From Anthoceros angustus (taxonomy: Eukaryota > Plantae > Anthocerotophyta), in the NCBI GenBank assembly GCA_010909165.1, contig MU008170.1, positions 1,612,001 to 1,676,000 on the forward strand: 64,000 bases of DNA, in the 5' to 3' direction. Every line of letters starts with the position of its first letter. Position 1 is the first letter of the stretch. Positions 1-14,460 of the stretch are shown one piece after another. Below the pieces are notes generated by a model that saw nothing but the letters and a program-made list of their open reading frames with translations, did not search any database and was not told where the DNA came from. A program made the translations under genes and the position numbers.

Positions 1-1253
1 GACAGCTCCAATCCGCGCACATGCTAGCATAGCAACTGGTAACTCAACCAGCATTGGCATATAAATCACCACCGCATCTCCCTTCCTCACACCAATCCCC
101 CTCAGGTAGTTTGCAAGCTGCCACCACATCAGCGGCCAGCAAGTGAGCGTCAAGATTTCACACAGCAGCCTGTACCGGAGCGTGGACATTCCTCCTCATT
201 GCACCCCTCATAAAAGCAACGAGCCAACGGCGTGAAACAACACTCCAGCGCACAATGGTTGGAAACACGTTCAAAATCGTCAGCCCTAGCAGCCAAGAAT
301 ACCTGGCAAATCTTATCAAGCAGCTGCTTGAAAGTAACCTTCTTATCCAATCCCACATCGTTGCCCTCCCAAATGATTGCAACGTCCTCACCCTTCCCTG
401 CCTCCACATGCCTATCAACTGCGTTGTAACATATATTCGTTTCACCACCTTTGAACCACTGACATCAAAAGCCGAAGAACAGGATGTAAAAACAGCTTCC
501 ACGAGACAAGCACAGCAATGACAACAAAAATCCATTCCGCGCGTCCTGGCCGATAAACAGCGCCACTCGCACCTCACTCGAATCTCAAACTCACTCACCT
601 CAACAGCAACGGGACCTTTATTCACGTCTATGTTTGCCGCGTGAACCTTGCCGTCCACGCTCGGCCATTTCTTCTTCCAGTAAAAACTGGACGCAATCTC
701 ACTCCAAAACGCGTCGGGATCTGAGATCGATTTCTCATACATAGCATCGTACTGCAAAATTCCATCACACTAATCAGCTCACTGACCTCACCTCCTCCTC
801 CTCGGCAGCAAGCAACAACACACGACCGAAATCGCGAATCCCAGTCCAAATTACGCCAGAATCTCACAATTTCCCGGGACGGAACGAGCGCACGGTCCCG
901 AAACTCCTGACTCGCATACTCCAGAACTTCCTCCTCCCCCTGCACCGCTTTCCCGGTCACCACAGCATCCGCCTGCGCGGCCTTGAGCTCGCTCACACCA
1001 AACCCGTTCCCGATCCCGTTCCCGCTCCCTCCCTCCATGCCGGCAGCAGGGAATGAAGAGGAGAGCCTACGCAAGGCGGCGGCCGGCGCCACAGCCAGCT
1101 GCCGCGATATCCCGAGCGTGGCCGCGGCGGTAGGGGAGGCGAGAGCGGCTTGCGCTTGCGCAGCGGGAGCGACACCGCAAGCCCACAGGCTCGCGGAGAT
1201 GCGGACGAAGCCGGTCCCGCACTGGCAGCCAGAGTTCCGTGCGCGGCAGCCAT
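1..1253 (-). CDS. ACS: Acetyl-CoA synthetase (acetate-CoA ligase), 5' part; gene runs off the left edge
   Basis: Exons 868-1038 (possibly extending to 1253), 599-751, 303-458 and <1-117 have GT-AG borders and join in frame. Translation: ...[13 protein letters not shown]|[29 protein letters not shown]..|[34 protein letters not shown]..|[39 protein letters not shown], the typical ACS N-terminus. The start codon is uncertain (see findings). Confidence 0.93.
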
Positions 1254-1363
1254 GGCTATCTGTTTGCCAGAGCTCGGCGTGTCAGGCCCCTTCTTCCATG
1301 CGAGAATCGAGATCCGTCCTAATCAATGCAGATACAGTCCACCTCAGTAACAGCGCTTTTCTT

Positions 1364-4300
1364 TTATTTTCTTGTACAAACTTCCGGAATACAGTGAGAC
1401 GTCTCGGATGAGAACCACTGGACTGCGGAGTGGCTGGATCCCAGCGGGGAAGGAGGCGCGGAATTCAAGTTTCGGATTGTTGCGAGGAAAAGCTGCTGCT
1501 GGAGCCTGGTCGGTGACGGGTCCGGGGCCAGGGCCATCTGCAGGGCTTGCTTGGAAAATTCCAGAAGAGGGCCGGCGAAGACGTGGGTGCCGGCCGTGGC
1601 GGGCTGGTGCATGGCTTGCTGCAGTCGCACGGCCATTTCCGCCACCATCTGCTTCCAGAGCTGGGCCTTGGCTTCGGCATGGGCGACCTGAGGAATGGGC
1701 GGAAGGATTGTCAGCGGGGTTGCGGAATGCGTTGGCTGCAAGGGCTGGGCTTTGTGATTCTTACCCTTTGGTCGACCTCCGAGAGCTTGATCTTGTCTAC
1801 GCCTCCTGAGCGGCACCGCCTGAGCCTGGGGTGCGGGCGTGCCGGGTTGTCTTGAGACGGCAGGCGGGGGGCGGGGGGCTGCCCGGATGGGGCAGTTTCT
1901 GCTTGGTCGGGTTCTGGTGCCTGTGGCTCTTGTTCTTGTTCCTCTTGGTCTTGGCCATGGTCTTGGTCTTGCTCGGATTGTTGGGGGCACGGGACGTGCA
2001 AGAATGGCGGGAGAGACAGGGTTGATGAAGTGAGTGGAGTGAGGCCGGGCCTGATGATCAGGTTCTCAGTCATGGGAACCACGAGGTCGAATTTGGTGAA
2101 GTCCTGCAGGGCAAGGGGTGGTGGATTAGGTTTGGGAAGGCAGTATGCCATGGAGGATGGAGAGGAGGCGGGTGTGGATGGAGGAGCTCACCACGCAACG
2201 GCGGCCGCCGGGGAGACGTGTCACAATGGTCCTGCATTCAGAACAGTAGTTCAGGGAGGAATGCATACAGCGTACAGTGGGGCACGGGGGAGGGAGGCTG
2301 TGACATACTCGAACCGCGCCTCAAGGCGGATGTCAGAAGGACGGTATGAATGGCGTGCTGCATACAGGGTCGACGAGTTCAGACGAGGAGGGATGTGAGC
2401 CTAATTCATGCTGGCAAGGACGGATTTTGTTTGGCATGCCGTTGGACGTACCCTGAAGTTTGCAAGATGTTGAAGAGTCGACGCCTTCGAGAATAACAAG
2501 GATCTCCATGTCGCACTCCTCCATAGCCTGTTTGGAGGAGAAGCAAAGCAGAGCATGACCAGATGAAAAATGATAAATTTTACGGTTTCTTGTTTGGCTG
2601 AGCAGTCCACCTGAATGGTGAGTCCGTAGAGAGGACTTGTGGCAGTGATAGGGTGCTTCACTAGACATGGGAGCCCCAGGAAAACCTGACTGCCTCCAAT
2701 GACCTGCAAACCAGGGTGTAAGTCAGAATAATACAGAGGTTCTTGCTCAGCAGGTGCGTGTATTATTCTTGCTCGCAAGGTGCGCTTGAGTGGAGGAAGC
2801 ATTGACCGGGAGGTTGATGAAATTGAATACACTCTCATCTTCCTGGGTAAGAGTGTTGTTAAGGGCCACCAACATCCTCACACTAGCCTGCGGAACAGCA
2901 TAGTCAGGACCTGCGACTTGGCGTGAAGTGTTGAGCCTTTTAGATGGTGTAATAACCTCAAGCTACCTCAATGACTTGATGCTTCCGGATGTTTGCCATT
3001 CTCACGCACAATACAGGGACACCATCTTCCTGAAAGAACAGGAGTAAGAGGAATAGGATCCCTACCATGGAATGCCCAGAAGATATTTTTGAAAATGTCC
3101 TACTTCTCATGCTGACCTCGTGAAGGACCATGAATCGGCTGAAGACCAGAGTTTGTGCACGACGAGTTGGACGAGAGAACCTGTGAAATGACGAATTAAA
3201 GACAAGGAATTCCAGAGGGAAGAAGGAAGACTAAGCATGCCGGGCAAGACTACAGACCTAGCATAAAACACACCGAGTAGCGAATAAGCCATCACCAAGC
3301 TCGCAATCGACTGGATCAGAACCAGACTGTTGGTTACCATGCACCTTGGATCCGGTGTCAGTTCGCCCCCATAACCTGGAACATTCAAGATAACCATCTC
3401 TGTCAAGCTAAGAAAGAGTCACATGGAACATAGCTGAAATGCAACATGCTACACCTTAAAAGCTCACCGATTGTCATAGAAGTCTGCACGCTGTTCACAA
3501 CACAAGGCAGGCGCAAAATGTTAACCAAGAAACTCCTTGCCGAGCTCTGCATGCAAGACTACTTACAACGGGGTGCCTCACTAACAATCCATGGTAAAGT
3601 AGTGGTCACCTGAACCATACAGCATGGCTGAACGTTTGGACTCCCGGGATACAGAAGTTGTTGTAAGCCTGCTGAAGCCAGTGAAGCAGACACTGGACTT
3701 GGTAGCGTTCCCAACACGAGGTTGAAGAATATTGCAAACACGTAATGCAGCAAATGCCACAGTACCTCATAGTAGAAGGGGATGGCAAACAGCACGAAGA
3801 GCAGGAAGTAGGAGAGGAACAGCAGCCAGAAAAACCTCATGTTGGGCATCTGCGGACACGATTGAGACACTCATCCATGTCATTGCCAGGTATTCAACCA
3901 CTGGTGCTCAGAAATGTGCACATTGGCACTAACTTACGTTCACTAGTGTGTGAAAGAGATCCCCCCAGTAGAGGAATGTCTTGGGTAATCCTCGGGTCTC
4001 GACATTCAGTCCACCCCTGACAACAAGCAGCAGAATTCATGGCATTATGCACACAGAAAGCGGAACAGATTCAGCATGCATGGTCCACTCTTGACAAATT
4101 CTTGTCACAGCGATGTTCAGCTACCTGATCGAGCAGAACAAAAGCATTCTACCGAAGCATTCGTGAATTACTGAGGCCCAACTGCCAAGAAGGTTCACTT
4201 GAACGGTAAGAGCAAAAGTTCAATGACAAAAGCAGCATGCATGCACCTCTTGTCCACCAGGGGCAGCTTCCTCATCTGCCTGGACAGCAAGGGGGCAGCG

Positions 4301-4380
4301 AATGACTCCCTCCCCGAATGCTCAGCCTGTGTTGCCATTACGGCGGCCACGAAAGCTTGAACAGCAACTAGGGGTCTCAT
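1364..4380 (-). CDS. Inward-rectifier potassium channel (Kir/IRK family), about 527-541 aa, 15 exons
   Basis: Exons 4247-4338(4380), 3938-4016, 3766-3849, 3610-3668, 3468-3490, 3258-3375, 3117-3180, 2967-3029, 2807-2887, 2611-2703, 2452-2527, 2309-2357, 2192-2231, 1765-2103, 1364-1687. All are GT-AG and phase-compatible. The product has WGDLFHTLVN, TM1, WFSVQTSMTIGYG, TM2, ARFSRPTRR, MANIRKHQVIEA, HPITATSPLY, EILVILEG, QARHSY and VDFTKF, colinear with Kir2-type channels. The first and last exons are less certain. Confidence 0.9.
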
Positions 4381-4454
4381 CACTCAATTCCTCCAGGCAC
4401 CAGAATTACAAGCTCCAGCGACGCCACCAGGTGAGACAAAATCTGCTGGGACAT

Positions 4455-4600
4455 TCTCAGACTCCTGAAACTCCGACATCCCCCTGATCGCACAGCCAGT
4501 GGAACACCAAAAGCAGGAGCATGTCCTCAACGAAGCTTAGAATTCCTCTGCAGCCAACAATGTGCAACTCCCGACGCGGGTTTGCAGCGCGGGTGCACTT
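4455..4600 (+). repeat. Dispersed diverged repeat, copy 1 (copy 2 at about 8995-9165)
   Basis: Shared blocks CTCAGACTCC, CACAGCCAGTGGAA, GCATGTCC.CAACGAAGCT.AGAA and CAATGTG.AACTCCCGAC..GGGTTTGCAGCGCG occur in the same order at both sites. Confidence 0.65.
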
Positions 4601-5961
4601 CTGAGCTTGGAGCCGAGGACCTGCGGTGCATCCGCAGCAGCCAGGTGCGAAGAAACTGGACGCGGCTGCTTCCGAATCGGCGCAGCAGCTGCAGGTCACC
4701 TGTCCAGAGGAGCTCTCCAGCATCAGATGAACACGGACTGTGGGCGGGGAAAGCAGCTGATCCGACGCCAAAGGAAATGGAGGCATAGGCCCCGGCTTGT
4801 CCGACTCTGGCCAGGTGGGAACACCACCAAAATGTCAGACATTCGGAGTTGCCACTTGGATATGCCTGCCAACCATAAAATAGCACGACCCCAACATCCC
4901 TCAAAGCAAGCGACGTTTGAGAGAACGTCACAGGGTACAACTTTGAAGATGCCGTGCAGAGTATAGAATGCGTGGCCAGAACTCGAAGCACGGATTCTAT
5001 TTACAGCCGAGGAAAAGATCCCAGCAGACCAGCTGTGGGGCAGTAGGCATCTCAGTGTGTCCTCGGACTCTATTCCTTTGTAATCCAGCAGCTTGGATGG
5101 CTATATAGTGTCAAGTCCGAGTGAGCTACACAACTGACAAGAACAAGCAAAAGGGTCCTGCAACAGATCCCTACATCTTGTGAAATGGCTCGGAACTTCA
5201 AGGGAAAACTCCCCCAAACAAGACCCTGGTAAACCAAATCACACCTGAGAACATCGTCAGGATTCATGTGGACAATCCACTGGACATCATGACGAGATGC
5301 TGGTTCACATGGCAAGGAGGTGCAACTAATCGGCCCAAGAATGGCAACCATAGAAATATTTCTCTAAAGGCTCAACATGGCAAGCAGGTGAGTACATGCC
5401 AGTGAATCGGTTAGCAGCGGCAATACGGAATGCAAGATCGGAGCATGGATCAAGGTCAAAACTAGGGTCAGAATTGTGCCTCTCCTGGATGTTTCATCTC
5501 CCACAATCAGTTCCCTTCTATTCCTGTACTTGCCACTCCTTGAAGTCTACCTCTCCTTGCTCGGTACCATAATAAGAGATGGCGATACTCTCCCCTTCTC
5601 TATACGAGTTCGTTGTTCCTAACTTGTCAAGATTGCCATTACCACGCTTCATCTTCTTCATCTTCCCCCACTCCGCTCCATCTTCCCTTCCCTTCCCTGT
5701 AGGATGGCTTCTATCATAAGCTGACATGCATAGAATAAATCTTATTTTTCATAAATTAAAATAATGTATAGATATAAACTTATATTTACATAAATAATGA
5801 GCATTACTATTTTCATTTAGATATTATAAACTTAATCCAAAATTACTGTACTAAATATTAAAATATAATACAGTAACCCTTTACCACTTTAAAAACTTAA
5901 TCAATAGTCTACTAATAAATCAAATCTTGAACTCATCGAGGTGCATGGAACTCGTTTTCTC

Positions 5962-10343: not shown

Positions 10344-13300
10344 ATGCAATGCAGCACCCGTGCTCCTGTTGGGCGGCCCATGGCGGTGTGGGAGGACACG
10401 CTGAGGGAACTCCATTTCCATGGGCATCTGCCCACCGCAGTTTTTGGGTCTCTGCCGACCGCTGGAAGAAGTTGCGCGGTTGGCATGGCCGGGGAGGCTG
10501 GGAGGACCGTACAGTTCCGGGTGAAGGTGGCATTGGCGTGCTCCGGTGGTGAGCTGAGTTCGAGTTGCGTCTCTAGCGATGGCCAGGAGGGTAATTTATC
10601 TGCCTTATGTTGGGGTATGTTGGACGTTAGAATTCTGTTTCAGAGCCATCTAATGCTTGGTTGGGGAGACAGGAGGAAGTGATGGAAAGCTGGAGAGGGA
10701 ACGGGTGCAGATGCTGTGGGAGGACTTCTTCTCGGATCCTTCTTTGTGGTGGGACAACAGGTTGGGGAAGGTATGTTTGTTGCAAGGCATCGACATTTCC
10801 TCTCCTGTGAAGTTGACGCTGGACAGGAAGAAGGTTTTTGGTGCTCAGTATGTGCAGTCTGCTCGTGTTTGCAGAGAAGTTCACGGTCTCCGGACTTCGT
10901 ACACAAGAGAAAAGGCGATGTTCTGTGGGCTCGCAGCAGGTTGAATCCTCCTTGGACAGAGTCATGGCTGGCGCTGTATGAACAACCTGCAGACGTGGTG
11001 ACGAAACCCGGGACTGATGTTCCAGCGCCCATATGGTGATTGTTGCCTGTGCAAAAGTTTGCTTTGTAAAGTTGCTTGCAAGCAGCTGATGTTGATGCAA
11101 AGGAAAGGTAGTCAATGTGGATAGTTTTGGACTCTGGTGCTAACTGAATTGAGCCTCCACAGGGTACAGGACAAATCCTGCGAAGCTCAAAGATTATGTG
11201 AGCAGGGGAGGCTGGAAGAGGCCGTGGATGCTCTGCTTCTGATGGGTCAGAAGGGCTGCCTGCCATCGGTGCAGACTTATTTTGAGCTGTTGCAGGCGTG
11301 CCGAAAACAAAAGGCTCTGCATGAGGCCAAGAGAGTACATGCTCACATTGTGGAGAATGGACTTGAGAACAACACATTTCTGGGTGAAATTGCGGTGAAT
11401 GTGTTTGTGAAGTGTGGGGATCTGCCATACGCACTCCTGCTATTTGACAGACTATCCCGACGGACGGCCTTATCTTGGGCTGCACTCATTTCAGGATATG
11501 CAAACGCTGGACAAGGTCAGAGGGCGGTCATGACCTACAAAGAGATGCAAAAGCAAGGCGTGGAACCAAACAAGTACACGTTTGGTGTTGTTCTCCAAGC
11601 TTGTAGCATTCCTGTGGACCTGACAGTGGGGAAGCAGGTTCATGCTGAGCTCGTCAGACGCAATTGGGAGTCTGATTCCTTTCTGGGTAAGTGTCTGGTG
11701 GGTATGTATGCAAAGTGTGGGAGCATGGTGGATGCACAGCATGTTTTTGAGACTCTGTCAAAGCGTGATGTGGTGTCATGGAATGATATGATTAGGGGCT
11801 ATGTGAAGGATGGGAAGGGTGAGATAGCGATTAAACTCTGCTTCCAATTGCAAGAGGAAGGCTTGTACCCAGACAAATGGACCTTTGTGAACGTGCTAAA
11901 AGCATGTATCAGTATATCAGTCAATGAAGAGGAGATGTTGATTGATGGGCAGCCTGTGAAAATGGGCTCTTTACGAAAGGGGAAGACTTTTCATGCTGAA
12001 GTGGCCGGAAGAAATTTAGAGACTGATGTCTTTGTGACCAACTGTCTGGTTAACATGTATGCCAAGTGTGGGAGCCTTCAAGATGCACGACAAGTATTTG
12101 ACGGATTGTCGCATGGGAACGTGGTGTTGTGGAATACAATGATCGCAGGTTACTCTCAGCAAGAAAAGGGTGAGGAGGCTTTGCAACTTTATGCTCAAAT
12201 GCAATGGTCTGATGTGAGACCTGATCAGCGTACGTTTGTAAGCGTCTTGAAAGCATGTGCTGTCCTGGGAGCCCTTGAAGAAGCCACATTGATTGATGGG
12301 CAGTTGTGGAAGGTGAAGTCCCTGCAACAAAGTAAAGTCATTCATGCTGACGTTGTCAAAGCAGGCTGTGAAATGGATGTCTTTGTGGAGAACACAATAG
12401 TAGACATGTATGCAAAATGCAGGAGCATGTTGGATGCCAGGTCTGCATTCAATGCACTGTCTCACCGCAATGTTGTATCATGGAATGCCATGATGCAAGG
12501 CTATTTGGAAGAGGGGGAAAGTGAGAGTGCCATGGAGTTATATAGCGAAATGCAAGAAGAGGGGATAAGACCAGACCACTGGACATTTGTTTGTGTGCTG
12601 AGGGCATGCAGTGACTTGGCGGTCGAGGAAAAAGATACTATTGTCACTGGAGTACCGATCAAAGAGAAGTCCTTGCGACAGGCAAGGAAGATCCACGCTC
12701 AACTAGTTGGTTTAGGTCTTGACTCAGATCTGTATGTTGGCAATACGTTAATGGATTTGTACGCAAAGTGTCGGAGCCCTGTGGATGCACGGACTGTTTT
12801 TGACACATTGTCCCAGAGGAACGTGGTGTCTTGGAACGTAATTATTGCATGCTATGCTCAGGAAGGAGATGGACATGAAGCACTGCAGCTTTATGCTGAC
12901 ATGCAAGGTTGTGGATTCAGTCCCAATGACCGCACATTTGTGAGTGTCCTTATGGCCTGCGGGATCCTCGCAACAAAGGAGGCGGAGACGGTTGTTGATG
13001 GCCAGCAAGTTAAAGTTAAATCTCTGCAGAAAGGCATCATGTTGCATGCGGAAGTCGTTAGAAGAGGCTATATGTCAGATATCTATGTGGGGAACTCTAT
13101 GGTGGATATGTATGCAAAGTGTGGATCCATTGTTGATGCGCGGCAGGTGTTGGACTCTTTGCCCCAGCGCACTGTGGTATCCTGGAATGCCATGATAGCA
13201 GGTTATGCTCAGCAGGAAGAAGGCGAGAACGCTTTGCAGGTGTATGAGCAGATGCGAGCTGTTGGTGAGATGCCAGATGACCGAACCTTTGTCAGCTTGC

Positions 13301-14460
13301 TAAAGGCAGTGAGCAGCCTGGCTTGTAAGGAGATGGAAACTGTCACAGATGGTGTAGCAGTCAAAGCAGAGTCACTAGAAAAGGGTGAGGCCCTGCATGC
13401 TGAGGCTATTAGGATGGGTTTTGAGTCTAACTTGTACGTCAAGAATACATTAGTTCGGATGTATGCGAACTGTGGGAGTCTTGCCAAAGCACAACGAGTG
13501 TTTGACTCTCTGTCCCAACCAGATGCGGTGTCGTGGAATGCCCTCATTGCTGGATACACTCAGCAGGGTCGGGCTAACCGGGCTCTGCAACTGTATGCTG
13601 ATATGCTACATTGTGAGGTGCAACCCACCGAGGCAACGTTTCTGAGTTTACTTAGAGCGTGCAGCAATGTAGGATCCCTGAGGTGGTGCAAACAAATCCA
13701 GTCAGACATTTTACAGTGCGGAACTGGGCTGAGTGTCCGTGTGTCAAACACGCTCATCCATGCATTTGCTCGATGTGGGAGCATGGTAGATGCACATCAT
13801 GTGTTTAACACCATGCCACAACAGCACACTGTGGCGTCCTGGAACGTACTAATTGCAGGATACGCCAAACAAGGCGATTCGGCAACGAGCTTGCAGTGCT
13901 TCGAGAGTATGCAACTGGCAGGCTTGAAGCCAGATTCTGTCACCTTCGTTTCCCTTCTCGCAGCATGCAGTCATGGAGGAAAAACAGACAAGGGCCTGGA
14001 ATTCTTCAATTCCATGAGCGAGGTGTTTGGCATCACAGCAACAAGCGCTCACTATGTCTGCATAGTCGATCTCCTCAGCCGTGCAGGACTTTTCAGCAAG
14101 GCAGAGCAGTTGCTCTTGGCCATGCCTGTCCAGCCTGATCTGGCAGTCTGGTTGTCGCTCCTCAGTGGGTGCAGGAAGTACGTCAACATAGAGCTAGGAC
14201 GACGTGCCTTTGAGCATGCCGTCAGGTTGGATCCCAAGCAAGGTGGCCCCTACATGCTCATGGCTAACCTCTACGCCCATGCCCACATCTGGCAGAAGGC
14301 GAAAGAGATAGAGGGATTGAGAGTCCGTGCGGATGCTCCGAGGAAGCACGGTGAGAGCTGGATAGAGGTAGGTGACTGTGTGCATCAGTTTGCAGTGGGA
14401 GATACCACCCACCCACAAACTCATCAGGTCTACCAACAACTCGATGAACTCAGTGCGTAA
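10344..14460 (+). CDS. PLS-class PPR protein (E1-E2-E+, no DYW) with an N-terminal OSB-type PDF motif, about 1253 aa
   Basis: join(10344..10548,10673..10770,10875..11035,11163..14460) is 3762 nt, all GT-AG and phase-matched, with branch-point-like CTAAT/CTAAC upstream of two acceptors. It encodes about 26 P/L/S motifs, five elongated LL motifs (e.g. EEEMLIDGQPVKMGSL) and the E+ signature HGESWIEV..HQFAVGDTTHP. Confidence 0.88.

Follow-up and report, generated by a model that had tools for sequence, protein, structure and literature searches.

Reviews of K+ transport in plants name Shaker-type channels, TPK channels and the TPK-derived KCO3 channels. [quoted passage not shown] Here we analyze a gene on the minus strand of a 64,000-nucleotide (nt) stretch of the Anthoceros angustus genome (assembly GCA_010909165.1, contig MU008170.1, positions 1,612,001 to 1,676,000 of the forward strand; hereafter the window, whose own numbering is used throughout), which an initial annotation made from the letters alone had proposed to encode a genuine inward-rectifier K+ (Kir) channel. 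Taken together, our results indicate that it is very probably an intact, transcribed nuclear gene for a K+ channel subunit of the Kir family (IRK, TC 1.A.2), inherited vertically from a green-algal ancestor and retained in this bryophyte-grade hornwort.

Spliced contigs define a gene of 15 exons

The coding sequence runs from 4380 to 1364 on the minus strand and is divided into 15 exons, whose spliced open reading frame (ORF) of 1626 nt encodes 541 amino acids (aa) with the frame intact. We built the exon model by hand from a six-frame reading of positions 1300-4700 and then checked it against spliced contigs from four public runs (X1, X2, X6 and X7), aligned to positions 1000-5400. Run X1 represents the same organism (17 of 18 contigs at least 99% identical), and X2, X6 and X7 represent three related organisms (90-99% identical). 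Contig joints confirmed every intron (14/14), each reading CT..AC on the plus strand, that is GT..AG on the minus strand, which gives the 15 exons counted in the initial annotation. As the joints are spliced, the contigs derive from processed RNA. The introns lie at 1688-1764, 2104-2191, 2232-2308, 2358-2451, 2528-2610, 2704-2806, 2888-2966, 3030-3116, 3181-3257, 3376-3467, 3491-3609, 3669-3765, 3850-3937 and 4017-4246; they are 77-230 nt long, mostly 77-119 nt, and the one at 3376-3467 splits the selectivity filter as TIG/YG, behind a micro-exon of 23 nt (3490-3468). The gene is composed as follows.

1344..4822, minus strand: transcription unit; 3' end at or below 1344, 5' untranslated region (UTR) reaching at least 4702 (X1) and 4822 (a related organism, X7)
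4247..4380, minus strand: exon 1, coding part (aa 1-45); variable N-terminus with the conserved KLPLVDKR at its end; alternative start Met15 (4338)
3938..4016, minus strand: exon 2 (aa 45-71), GGLNVETRGLPKTFLYWGDLFHTLVN; N-terminal strand and slide-helix region; contig joints 4015/4246 and 3849/3938
3766..3849, minus strand: exon 3 (aa 72-99); first transmembrane segment (TM1), hydropathy peak at 74-82 (19-residue window)
3610..3668, minus strand: exon 4 (aa 100-119); C105 (FCIPG) in a short outer loop, and the first part of the pore helix
3468..3490, minus strand: exon 5, the 23-nt micro-exon (aa 119-127), VQTSMTI-G; Q121 and the first half of the filter; contig joints 3373/3466 and 3490/3610
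3258..3375, minus strand: exon 6 (aa 127-166); G-YG of the filter, E131, C138 (DPRC) and TM2 with A156; IRK profile positions 102-136
3117..3180, minus strand: exon 7 (aa 166-187); basic linker from TM2 to the cytoplasmic domain with R166, R169, R172 and R173 (RFSRPTRRAQTLVFS)
2967..3029, minus strand: exon 8 (aa 188-208); first IRK_C strands, E208 at the Kir2.1 E224 site
2807..2887, minus strand: exon 9 (aa 209-235); IRK_C
2611..2703, minus strand: exon 10 (aa 236-266); IRK_C (E 0.0046, profile positions 66-92)
2452..2527, minus strand: exon 11 (aa 267-292); G-loop region of IRK_C, ILEGVDSSTS, with D283 and S284; profile positions 95-118
2309..2357, minus strand: exon 12 (aa 292-308); donor GTATGT, contig joint 2230/2308
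2192..2231, minus strand: exon 13 (aa 308-321)
1765..2103, minus strand: exon 14 (aa 322-434); last part of IRK_C (DFTKFDLVVP), followed by a linker that is acidic and rich in Pro and Gln
1364..1687, minus strand: exon 15 (aa 435-541 and stop); C-terminal module with a helix pair at about aa 435-490 (1520-1687) containing AEAKAQLWKQMVAEMAVRLQQ and PLLEFSKQALQMAL

Two other exon boundaries were considered and rejected: a candidate 24-nt exon at 4148-4125, since the contigs join exon 1 directly to 4016, and a candidate donor of exon 12 at 2276, since the contigs place that donor at 2309 (GTATGT).

The 5' end of the coding sequence allows two readings. At the first ATG (4380) two of the related organisms carry a 9-nt deletion (4372-4388), and the closest orthologue in the protein collection searched (P0048, an intact sequence from a transcript of run SRR33208242, 66% identity) can be aligned only from residue 15. 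Met15 (4338), instead of Met1 (4380), may be the true, conserved start. Upstream, the 5' UTR (4381-4822) measures at least 320 nt, extending to about 440 nt in one related organism. Of its six upstream ATGs, one is in frame, but a stop codon closes it ahead of the main ORF; translational control through these ATGs is possible. We also observed one 179-nt contig of X1 that runs unspliced from exon 1 into intron 1 down to 4124, where its fit ends. This is the position of a GT donor (CAG/GTAGCT), the corresponding joint not being among those listed, and the contig end may reflect an alternative donor or a retained-intron isoform. Such an isoform would break the frame from Met1 and could encode only a protein starting from the ATG at 4147.

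The protein belongs to the Kir/IRK family

The window protein itself was analyzed by blastp, mafft, hmmsearch and a tree; Pfam, Atlas and structure prediction were applied to orthologues. Residues 33-334 of the spliced protein, and thus both domains, were matched with 241 bits (E 7e-70 for Z=1e6) by a hidden Markov model (HMM) of 85 Kir/KirBac-like proteins from outside the green lineage, comprising bacterial KirBac-like proteins and one fish Kir2.2-like protein. In the other direction, a profile of 18 green-lineage members searched against solved structures retrieved Kir6.1 first (2.7e-65), followed by Kir6.2, Kir2.2 (2.4e-62), Kir2.1 and GIRK2, with the bacterial structures KirBac3.1 (7e-50) and KirBac1.1 (3e-33) ranked lower; apart from one weak match to a KcsA-type pore, the structures matched were Kir or KirBac only.

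Single exons already pointed to the same family. Exon pieces scored below the Pfam thresholds but in colinear order (IRK 13.6 bits at profile positions 102-136; IRK_C 17.1 and 12.8 bits at 66-92 and 95-118), and the 40-aa product of exon 6, searched against 1.84 billion representatives, retrieved 26 clusters. Against these clusters and later matches, blastp with the spliced protein gave identities of 38-75% and E values from 1e-64 down to 0; for proteins that pass both Pfam IRK and IRK_C the E values were between 1e-100 and 0. The gathering score of Pfam IRK_C was passed by all ten full-length relatives scanned (38-74% identity; 56-102 bits), and that of IRK by eight of the same ten (scores 19.6-68 bits for a cut-off of 22.7 bits). 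P0017 falls just below for IRK (19.6 versus 22.7 bits), and P0014 has the IRK_C match alone, its alignment to the window protein starting only at residue 124. A search of the PDB with a 38-aa piece of exon 6 gave only a chance match to a G-protein-coupled receptor.

Structural data agree with this assignment. Hydropathy peaks of the window protein at about 76-98 and 140-164 correspond to TM1 and TM2 on both sides of the pore, and the filter TIGYG (125-129) aligns column by column with those of Kir2.2-like and KirBac-like proteins. The AlphaFold (AF2) model of P0048 has a Kir core with a predicted local distance difference test score (pLDDT) of about 90 and strands over residues 163-317 (pLDDT 85-95), the IRK_C region directly after TM2; Foldseek comparison of this model with the PDB returned Kir6.2, KirBac3.1 and Kir2.2 as top matches (E about 1e-25). 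As judged from its sequence, the window gene is a member of the Kir/IRK family (TC 1.A.2; Pfam PF01007 and PF17655), and appears nearer to the animal type than to KirBac. The claim of a genuine Kir was borne out by the HMM score and by the relatives that pass Pfam IRK and IRK_C, and among the checks that had been proposed along with it, HMM and Pfam membership, phylogeny and RNA junctions gave favorable results.

The Chara orthologue carries the automatic name "ATP-activated inward rectifier K channel", which would make the window protein a nucleotide-regulated, Kir6-like channel. In line with this name, Kir6.1 and Kir6.2 are the best-scoring solved structures, and the counterparts of Kir6.2 K185, R201 and G334 read R, R and G in our alignments. 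On the contrary, the N-terminal half of the Kir6.2 ATP site is aligned to dissimilar residues, and Kir6 leads Kir2.2 by only about 10 bits in 220. We consider nucleotide regulation improbable, and because of this narrow lead no animal Kir subfamily is assigned to the window protein.

Orthologues occur in bryophytes and green algae

Searches of the protein collection, from which the window protein itself is absent, identified orthologues with 50-75% identity to it. In liverworts they come from Marchantia polymorpha (MPTK1_2g08920, P0045), M. paleacea, Riccia and Calypogeia, and in mosses from Physcomitrium patens (an "uncharacterized protein", P0041) and Ceratodon (KC19_7G047600). Among streptophyte algae they were found in the Zygnematophyceae Spirogloea, Mesotaenium and Closterium as well as in Chara (GBG86441.1, P0012), Klebsormidium (P0050, named "Inward rectifier K+ channel") and Mesostigma, and the chlorophyte members are from Cymbomonas, Monoraphidium, Chlamydomonas eustigma and Tetradesmus.

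No named lycophyte, fern, gymnosperm or angiosperm protein matched in the protein-collection searches and cluster look-ups, and the same collection returned very many methionyl-tRNA synthetase (MetRS) proteins of angiosperms, ferns, lycophytes and conifers. As none of these vascular groups gave a named match, the loss of the channel seems to cover vascular plants as a whole. The initial annotation had placed this loss in seed plants, a narrower group.

The same annotation had considered that orthologues might prove ubiquitous and already characterized in land plants. They are indeed present across bryophytes, and those of mosses, liverworts and streptophyte algae are already deposited under automatic names, but no characterized one was found. 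A full-text literature search, with most subscription journals outside its coverage, retrieved no study of IRK-domain channels from bryophytes or from streptophyte algae, which is weak evidence of absence; in the plant papers examined, "Kir-like" always refers to KCO3. The window protein and its orthologues read GYGG, and it is plausible, comparing this with the motif G-[YFL]-G-[DE], that the 2012 inventory missed the moss gene through its motif requirement.

Some observations concern individual members of the family. In Closterium sp. Yama58-4 and NIES-65 (P0017 and P0051) the annotation combines the Kir orthologue and a class IV aminotransferase domain (PF01063) in one protein, the result either of merged gene models or of a true fusion. 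P0058 and P0059, of about 340 aa and first labelled bacterial-like, group with the Logan sequence P0056 inside the green-algal part of the tree (97/95) and may be short eukaryotic algal Kirs rather than bacterial ones. A role linked to the flagellum was set aside, since Zygnematophyceae carry the gene but lack any flagellate stage, and since no match appeared among named proteins of ferns and lycophytes, plants that do have such a stage.

Losses do occur in this family, as its absence from named vascular-plant proteins indicates, and this, together with the long 5' UTR and its six ATGs, could be taken to mean that the window gene is a decaying or silent remnant, in other words a pseudogene that is still transcribed. 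Against such decay, the frame is intact over 15 exons, all the family-invariant residues that were checked are present in the pore and in the cytoplasmic domain, and P0048 is intact as well. Moreover, 6 of the 11 listed coding differences between the window gene and the related organisms are synonymous, and in the channel core (codons 122-278) the proportion is 5 of 7, the remaining two being the conservative changes T>S and I>L. We regard a pseudogene as very improbable.

The gene descends vertically within the green lineage

A maximum-likelihood tree of 49 rows (LG+C20) placed the window protein inside a supported embryophyte clade (100/98), where it pairs with P0048 (100/99). This pair is sister to one further sequence together with liverworts and mosses, and outside the embryophytes follow, in order, streptophyte algae, chlorophytes and bacteria. 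The gene tree is thus the species tree, with the window protein in the hornwort position. We also mapped the exons of the Marchantia and Klebsormidium genes to their genomic loci by exact reconstruction. Results showed that all 14 intron positions and phases are common with Marchantia, exons 2-13 having identical lengths (including the 23-nt micro-exon), and that 8 of the 14 positions are common with Klebsormidium, among them the intron within TIG/YG.

The genes flanking it are plant genes. An intronless MetRS gene lies in the window, as do genes for a DENN-WD40 protein and a PLS-E+ PPR protein; this MetRS has at most 77% identity to the collection, with liverworts and Sphagnum (76-77%) ahead of lycophyte and conifer (73%). 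The GC content is about 50%, and the published Anthoceros angustus genome, with 119 Mb and 49.6% GC, is described as consisting to about 60% of transposable elements and as showing a large expansion of PLS-PPR genes (PMC7027989).

These data bear on a recent horizontal acquisition from an animal or a bacterium, or an assembly contaminant, a reading that could be proposed considering that knowledge of the Kir family comes above all from animals and bacteria and that plant K+ channel inventories omit it (PMC3410407). The gene has 14 spliceosomal introns, each sharing position and phase with Marchantia, its flanking genes are plant genes, the same spliced gene is found in three related organisms, and its tree agrees with the species tree of green plants. 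Because the tree mirrors the species tree and the introns are shared with Marchantia and Klebsormidium, the gene descended vertically, and horizontal transfer and contamination are excluded; we leave this reading practically no weight. In this respect the initial annotation, which had described a land-plant gene retained from an ancestor and had taken its many introns as an argument against transfer or contamination, was right on each point: neighbors, nearest MetRS relatives and tree position identify a land-plant gene, the tree and the introns an ancestral one, and the argument from introns gains from their common positions and phases.

Several neighboring genes on the plus strand are single ORFs, and these large uninterrupted ORFs stand against the 14 introns of the Kir gene:

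11137-14460, plus strand: PLS-E+ PPR gene, 1107 aa
21583-23991, plus strand: MetRS gene, 802 aa
50256-51665, plus strand: DEAD-box helicase gene, 469 aa
57422-61126, plus strand: DENN-WD40 gene, SCD1-like, 1234 aa

They fit the low mean intron number of A. angustus, 3.8 per gene (PMC7027989). Downstream on the same strand as the Kir gene, an ORF piece (161-757, minus strand) matches the N-terminus of acetyl-CoA synthetase (ACAS_N, 7.8e-10), and a 5.7-kb transcript contig of X1 extends into 1000-1151.

Diagnostic residues predict a weak rectifier

We mapped functional residues on a 15-sequence alignment that includes the fish Kir2.2-like protein and bacterial relatives. The Kir2.1/Kir2.2 site numbers are anchored on the motifs of the alignment. 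In the window protein these motifs lie at C105 (FCIPG), 125-129 (TIGYG), C138 (DPRC) and 165-173 (ARFSRPTRR), hence the filter, the Cys pair and the basic motif first recognized in the letters are present in the spliced product. The diagnostic sites compare as follows.

Outer Cys pair (Kir2.1 C122/C154): C105 and C138, conserved and in the same columns as both Cys of the fish Kir2.2-like protein; bacterial relatives have neither
Linker from TM2 to the cytoplasmic domain: ARFSRPTRRAQTLVFS, of animal length and three residues longer than in bacteria, basic at 4 of 5 Kir2.2 contact positions for phosphatidylinositol 4,5-bisphosphate (PIP2)
Kir2.1 E138 (pore helix): Q121, with Q also in many bacterial relatives
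Kir2.1 R148: E131
Kir2.1 D172 (rectification controller): A156
Kir2.1 E224: E208, conserved
Kir2.1 E299: S284, with the acidic D283 one position earlier
Kir2.1 D255/D259 loop: shorter and non-acidic

The sites that the initial annotation had read as changed, with Ala for D172 and a replaced E-R pair in the pore, were found as described. Its statement that both cytoplasmic acidic sites are kept holds for E224 (E208) and fails for E299, which aligns to S284 with D283 one residue earlier. As Ala occupies the controller site (A156) and only E208 and D283 are left of the cytoplasmic acidic ring, the window channel is predicted to be a weak rectifier, and the expectation of a weak or unusual rectifier in the initial annotation is a reasonable one.

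Across the green lineage, Mesostigma and Cymbomonas have D at the controller site, Klebsormidium has N, and A is found in Zygnematophyceae, in Chara and in every land-plant member. This series gives the impression that the acidic residue was lost in steps within the streptophyte lineage.

The C-terminal module is specific to streptophytes

In the window protein the Kir core is followed by about 90 acidic, Pro/Gln-rich residues, and the matching stretch is disordered in the P0048 model. Behind this linker lies the helix pair of exon 15 (AEAKAQLWKQMVAEMAVRLQQ ... PLLEFSKQALQMAL), to which helices 422-454 and 462-478 of the P0048 model correspond. The pair is conserved from Klebsormidium and Chara to land plants and is specific to the streptophyte Kir clade. 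The module (1367-1687, minus strand) had no match in Pfam and no usable one in Atlas, and against the PDB it gave only PABC/MLLE domains at non-significant values (E 0.36-0.5). Our guess is that the helix pair serves assembly or regulation.

Discussion

The results are best explained by an intact and transcribed Kir-family gene of vertical descent, and its residues suggest how the product could work. Four subunits would form a pore with the canonical T-I-G-Y-G filter, extended by the cytoplasmic vestibule of IRK_C. Opening would probably depend on an anionic, PIP2-like lipid bound at R166, R169, R172 and R173 of the linker, which has the length of eukaryotic ones. With rectification by Mg2+ and polyamines expected to be weak, the channel would provide a weakly rectifying K+ conductance that either holds the membrane potential near the K+ equilibrium potential or admits K+, and the streptophyte-specific helix pair behind the disordered linker would have a probable role in assembly or regulation.

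As for the membrane concerned, the C105-C138 pair suggests one with an oxidising outer face, in the secretory pathway or at the plasma membrane. A Kir-fold channel could also reside in an internal membrane (endoplasmic reticulum, vacuole, plastid or other organelle) and have a role other than K+ uptake or potential setting at the plasma membrane. The variable N-terminal 40 residues would leave room for this, and plant TPK channels are mostly vacuolar. However, the N-terminus is not conserved among orthologues, and the conserved pair of outer Cys residues is in keeping with an oxidising environment on the luminal or extracellular side. We consider an internal location unlikely, while giving it appreciable weight.

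Several points weigh against the explanation given above. The runs that provided the contigs carry the guessed label "RNA?", their RNA nature being derived from the spliced joints; the start codon is ambiguous between Met1 (4380) and Met15 (4338); and the Pfam test of the spliced protein is indirect, combining sub-threshold exon pieces with orthologues above threshold. In addition, the E-R bridge of the animal pore helix is replaced by Q121/E131, and the stability of the filter and its selectivity could differ.

Combining the different lines of evidence, we tentatively propose, with somewhat less than even confidence, that non-vascular land plants and their algal relatives have a third class of K+ channels besides Shaker and TPK. 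This class would consist of true Kirs with an Ala controller, Q/E in place of the E-R bridge and a streptophyte C-terminal module, missed by inventories based on GYG[D/E], and its members would be lipid-gated, weakly rectifying and add to the resting K+ conductance of bryophytes. If this is true, the loss at the origin of vascular plants marks a real change in how the membrane potential is set.

The data show a conserved, expressed true Kir gene in each of the three lineages of bryophytes and in all major lineages of streptophyte algae that were sampled, with a gene structure stable since before Klebsormidium split from the land-plant lineage. This raises the question of which task an animal-type Kir has in plant cells and what took its place in vascular plants, a question that is tractable in Marchantia, Physcomitrium and Anthoceros agrestis. 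Moreover, the natural series from D to N to A at the controller site offers a ready-made experiment on the evolution of rectification.

Comparison with known systems

With Arabidopsis KCO3 the window protein has only the TM-P-TM topology in common. KCO3 has no IRK or IRK_C domain, and no TPK-type domain was detected in the relatives scanned with Pfam; in the sense of family membership the window gene is unrelated to KCO3.

The bacterial channels KirBac3.1 and KirBac1.1 share with it the two-domain fold, the short outer loop and "GVD" in the G-loop region, and a Gln in the pore helix recurs in many of the bacterial relatives. On the contrary, the Cys pair is missing from the bacterial proteins, which also have a linker shorter by three residues; KirBac3.1 and KirBac1.1 reach 173 and 119 bits against the plant profile, whereas the animal Kirs reach 215-225 bits.

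Animal Kirs (Kir6.1/6.2, Kir2.1/2.2 and Kir3.2) have the same succession of slide helix, TM1, pore helix, T-I-G-Y-G, TM2 and beta-rich cytoplasmic domain, the same outer Cys pair (C122/C154 of Kir2.1 being C105/C138 of the window protein) and a basic linker of equal length, with four of the five PIP2-contact positions of Kir2.2 basic and E224 kept. The identity is only about 30%, and the window protein differs by its very short outer loop, by Q121/E131 in place of E138-R148, by Ala instead of D172, by a shorter and non-acidic D255/D259 loop and by Ser at E299 with Asp one residue earlier, as well as by its 14 introns and a 200-aa C-terminal extension that includes the streptophyte-specific helix pair. 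The closest likeness is with the orthologues of Marchantia, Physcomitrium, Ceratodon, Klebsormidium and Chara, which have the same filter, linker and C-terminal helices and, except in Chara, the same Cys pair. In conclusion, the gene represents an overlooked channel class of land plants and not a new kind of protein.

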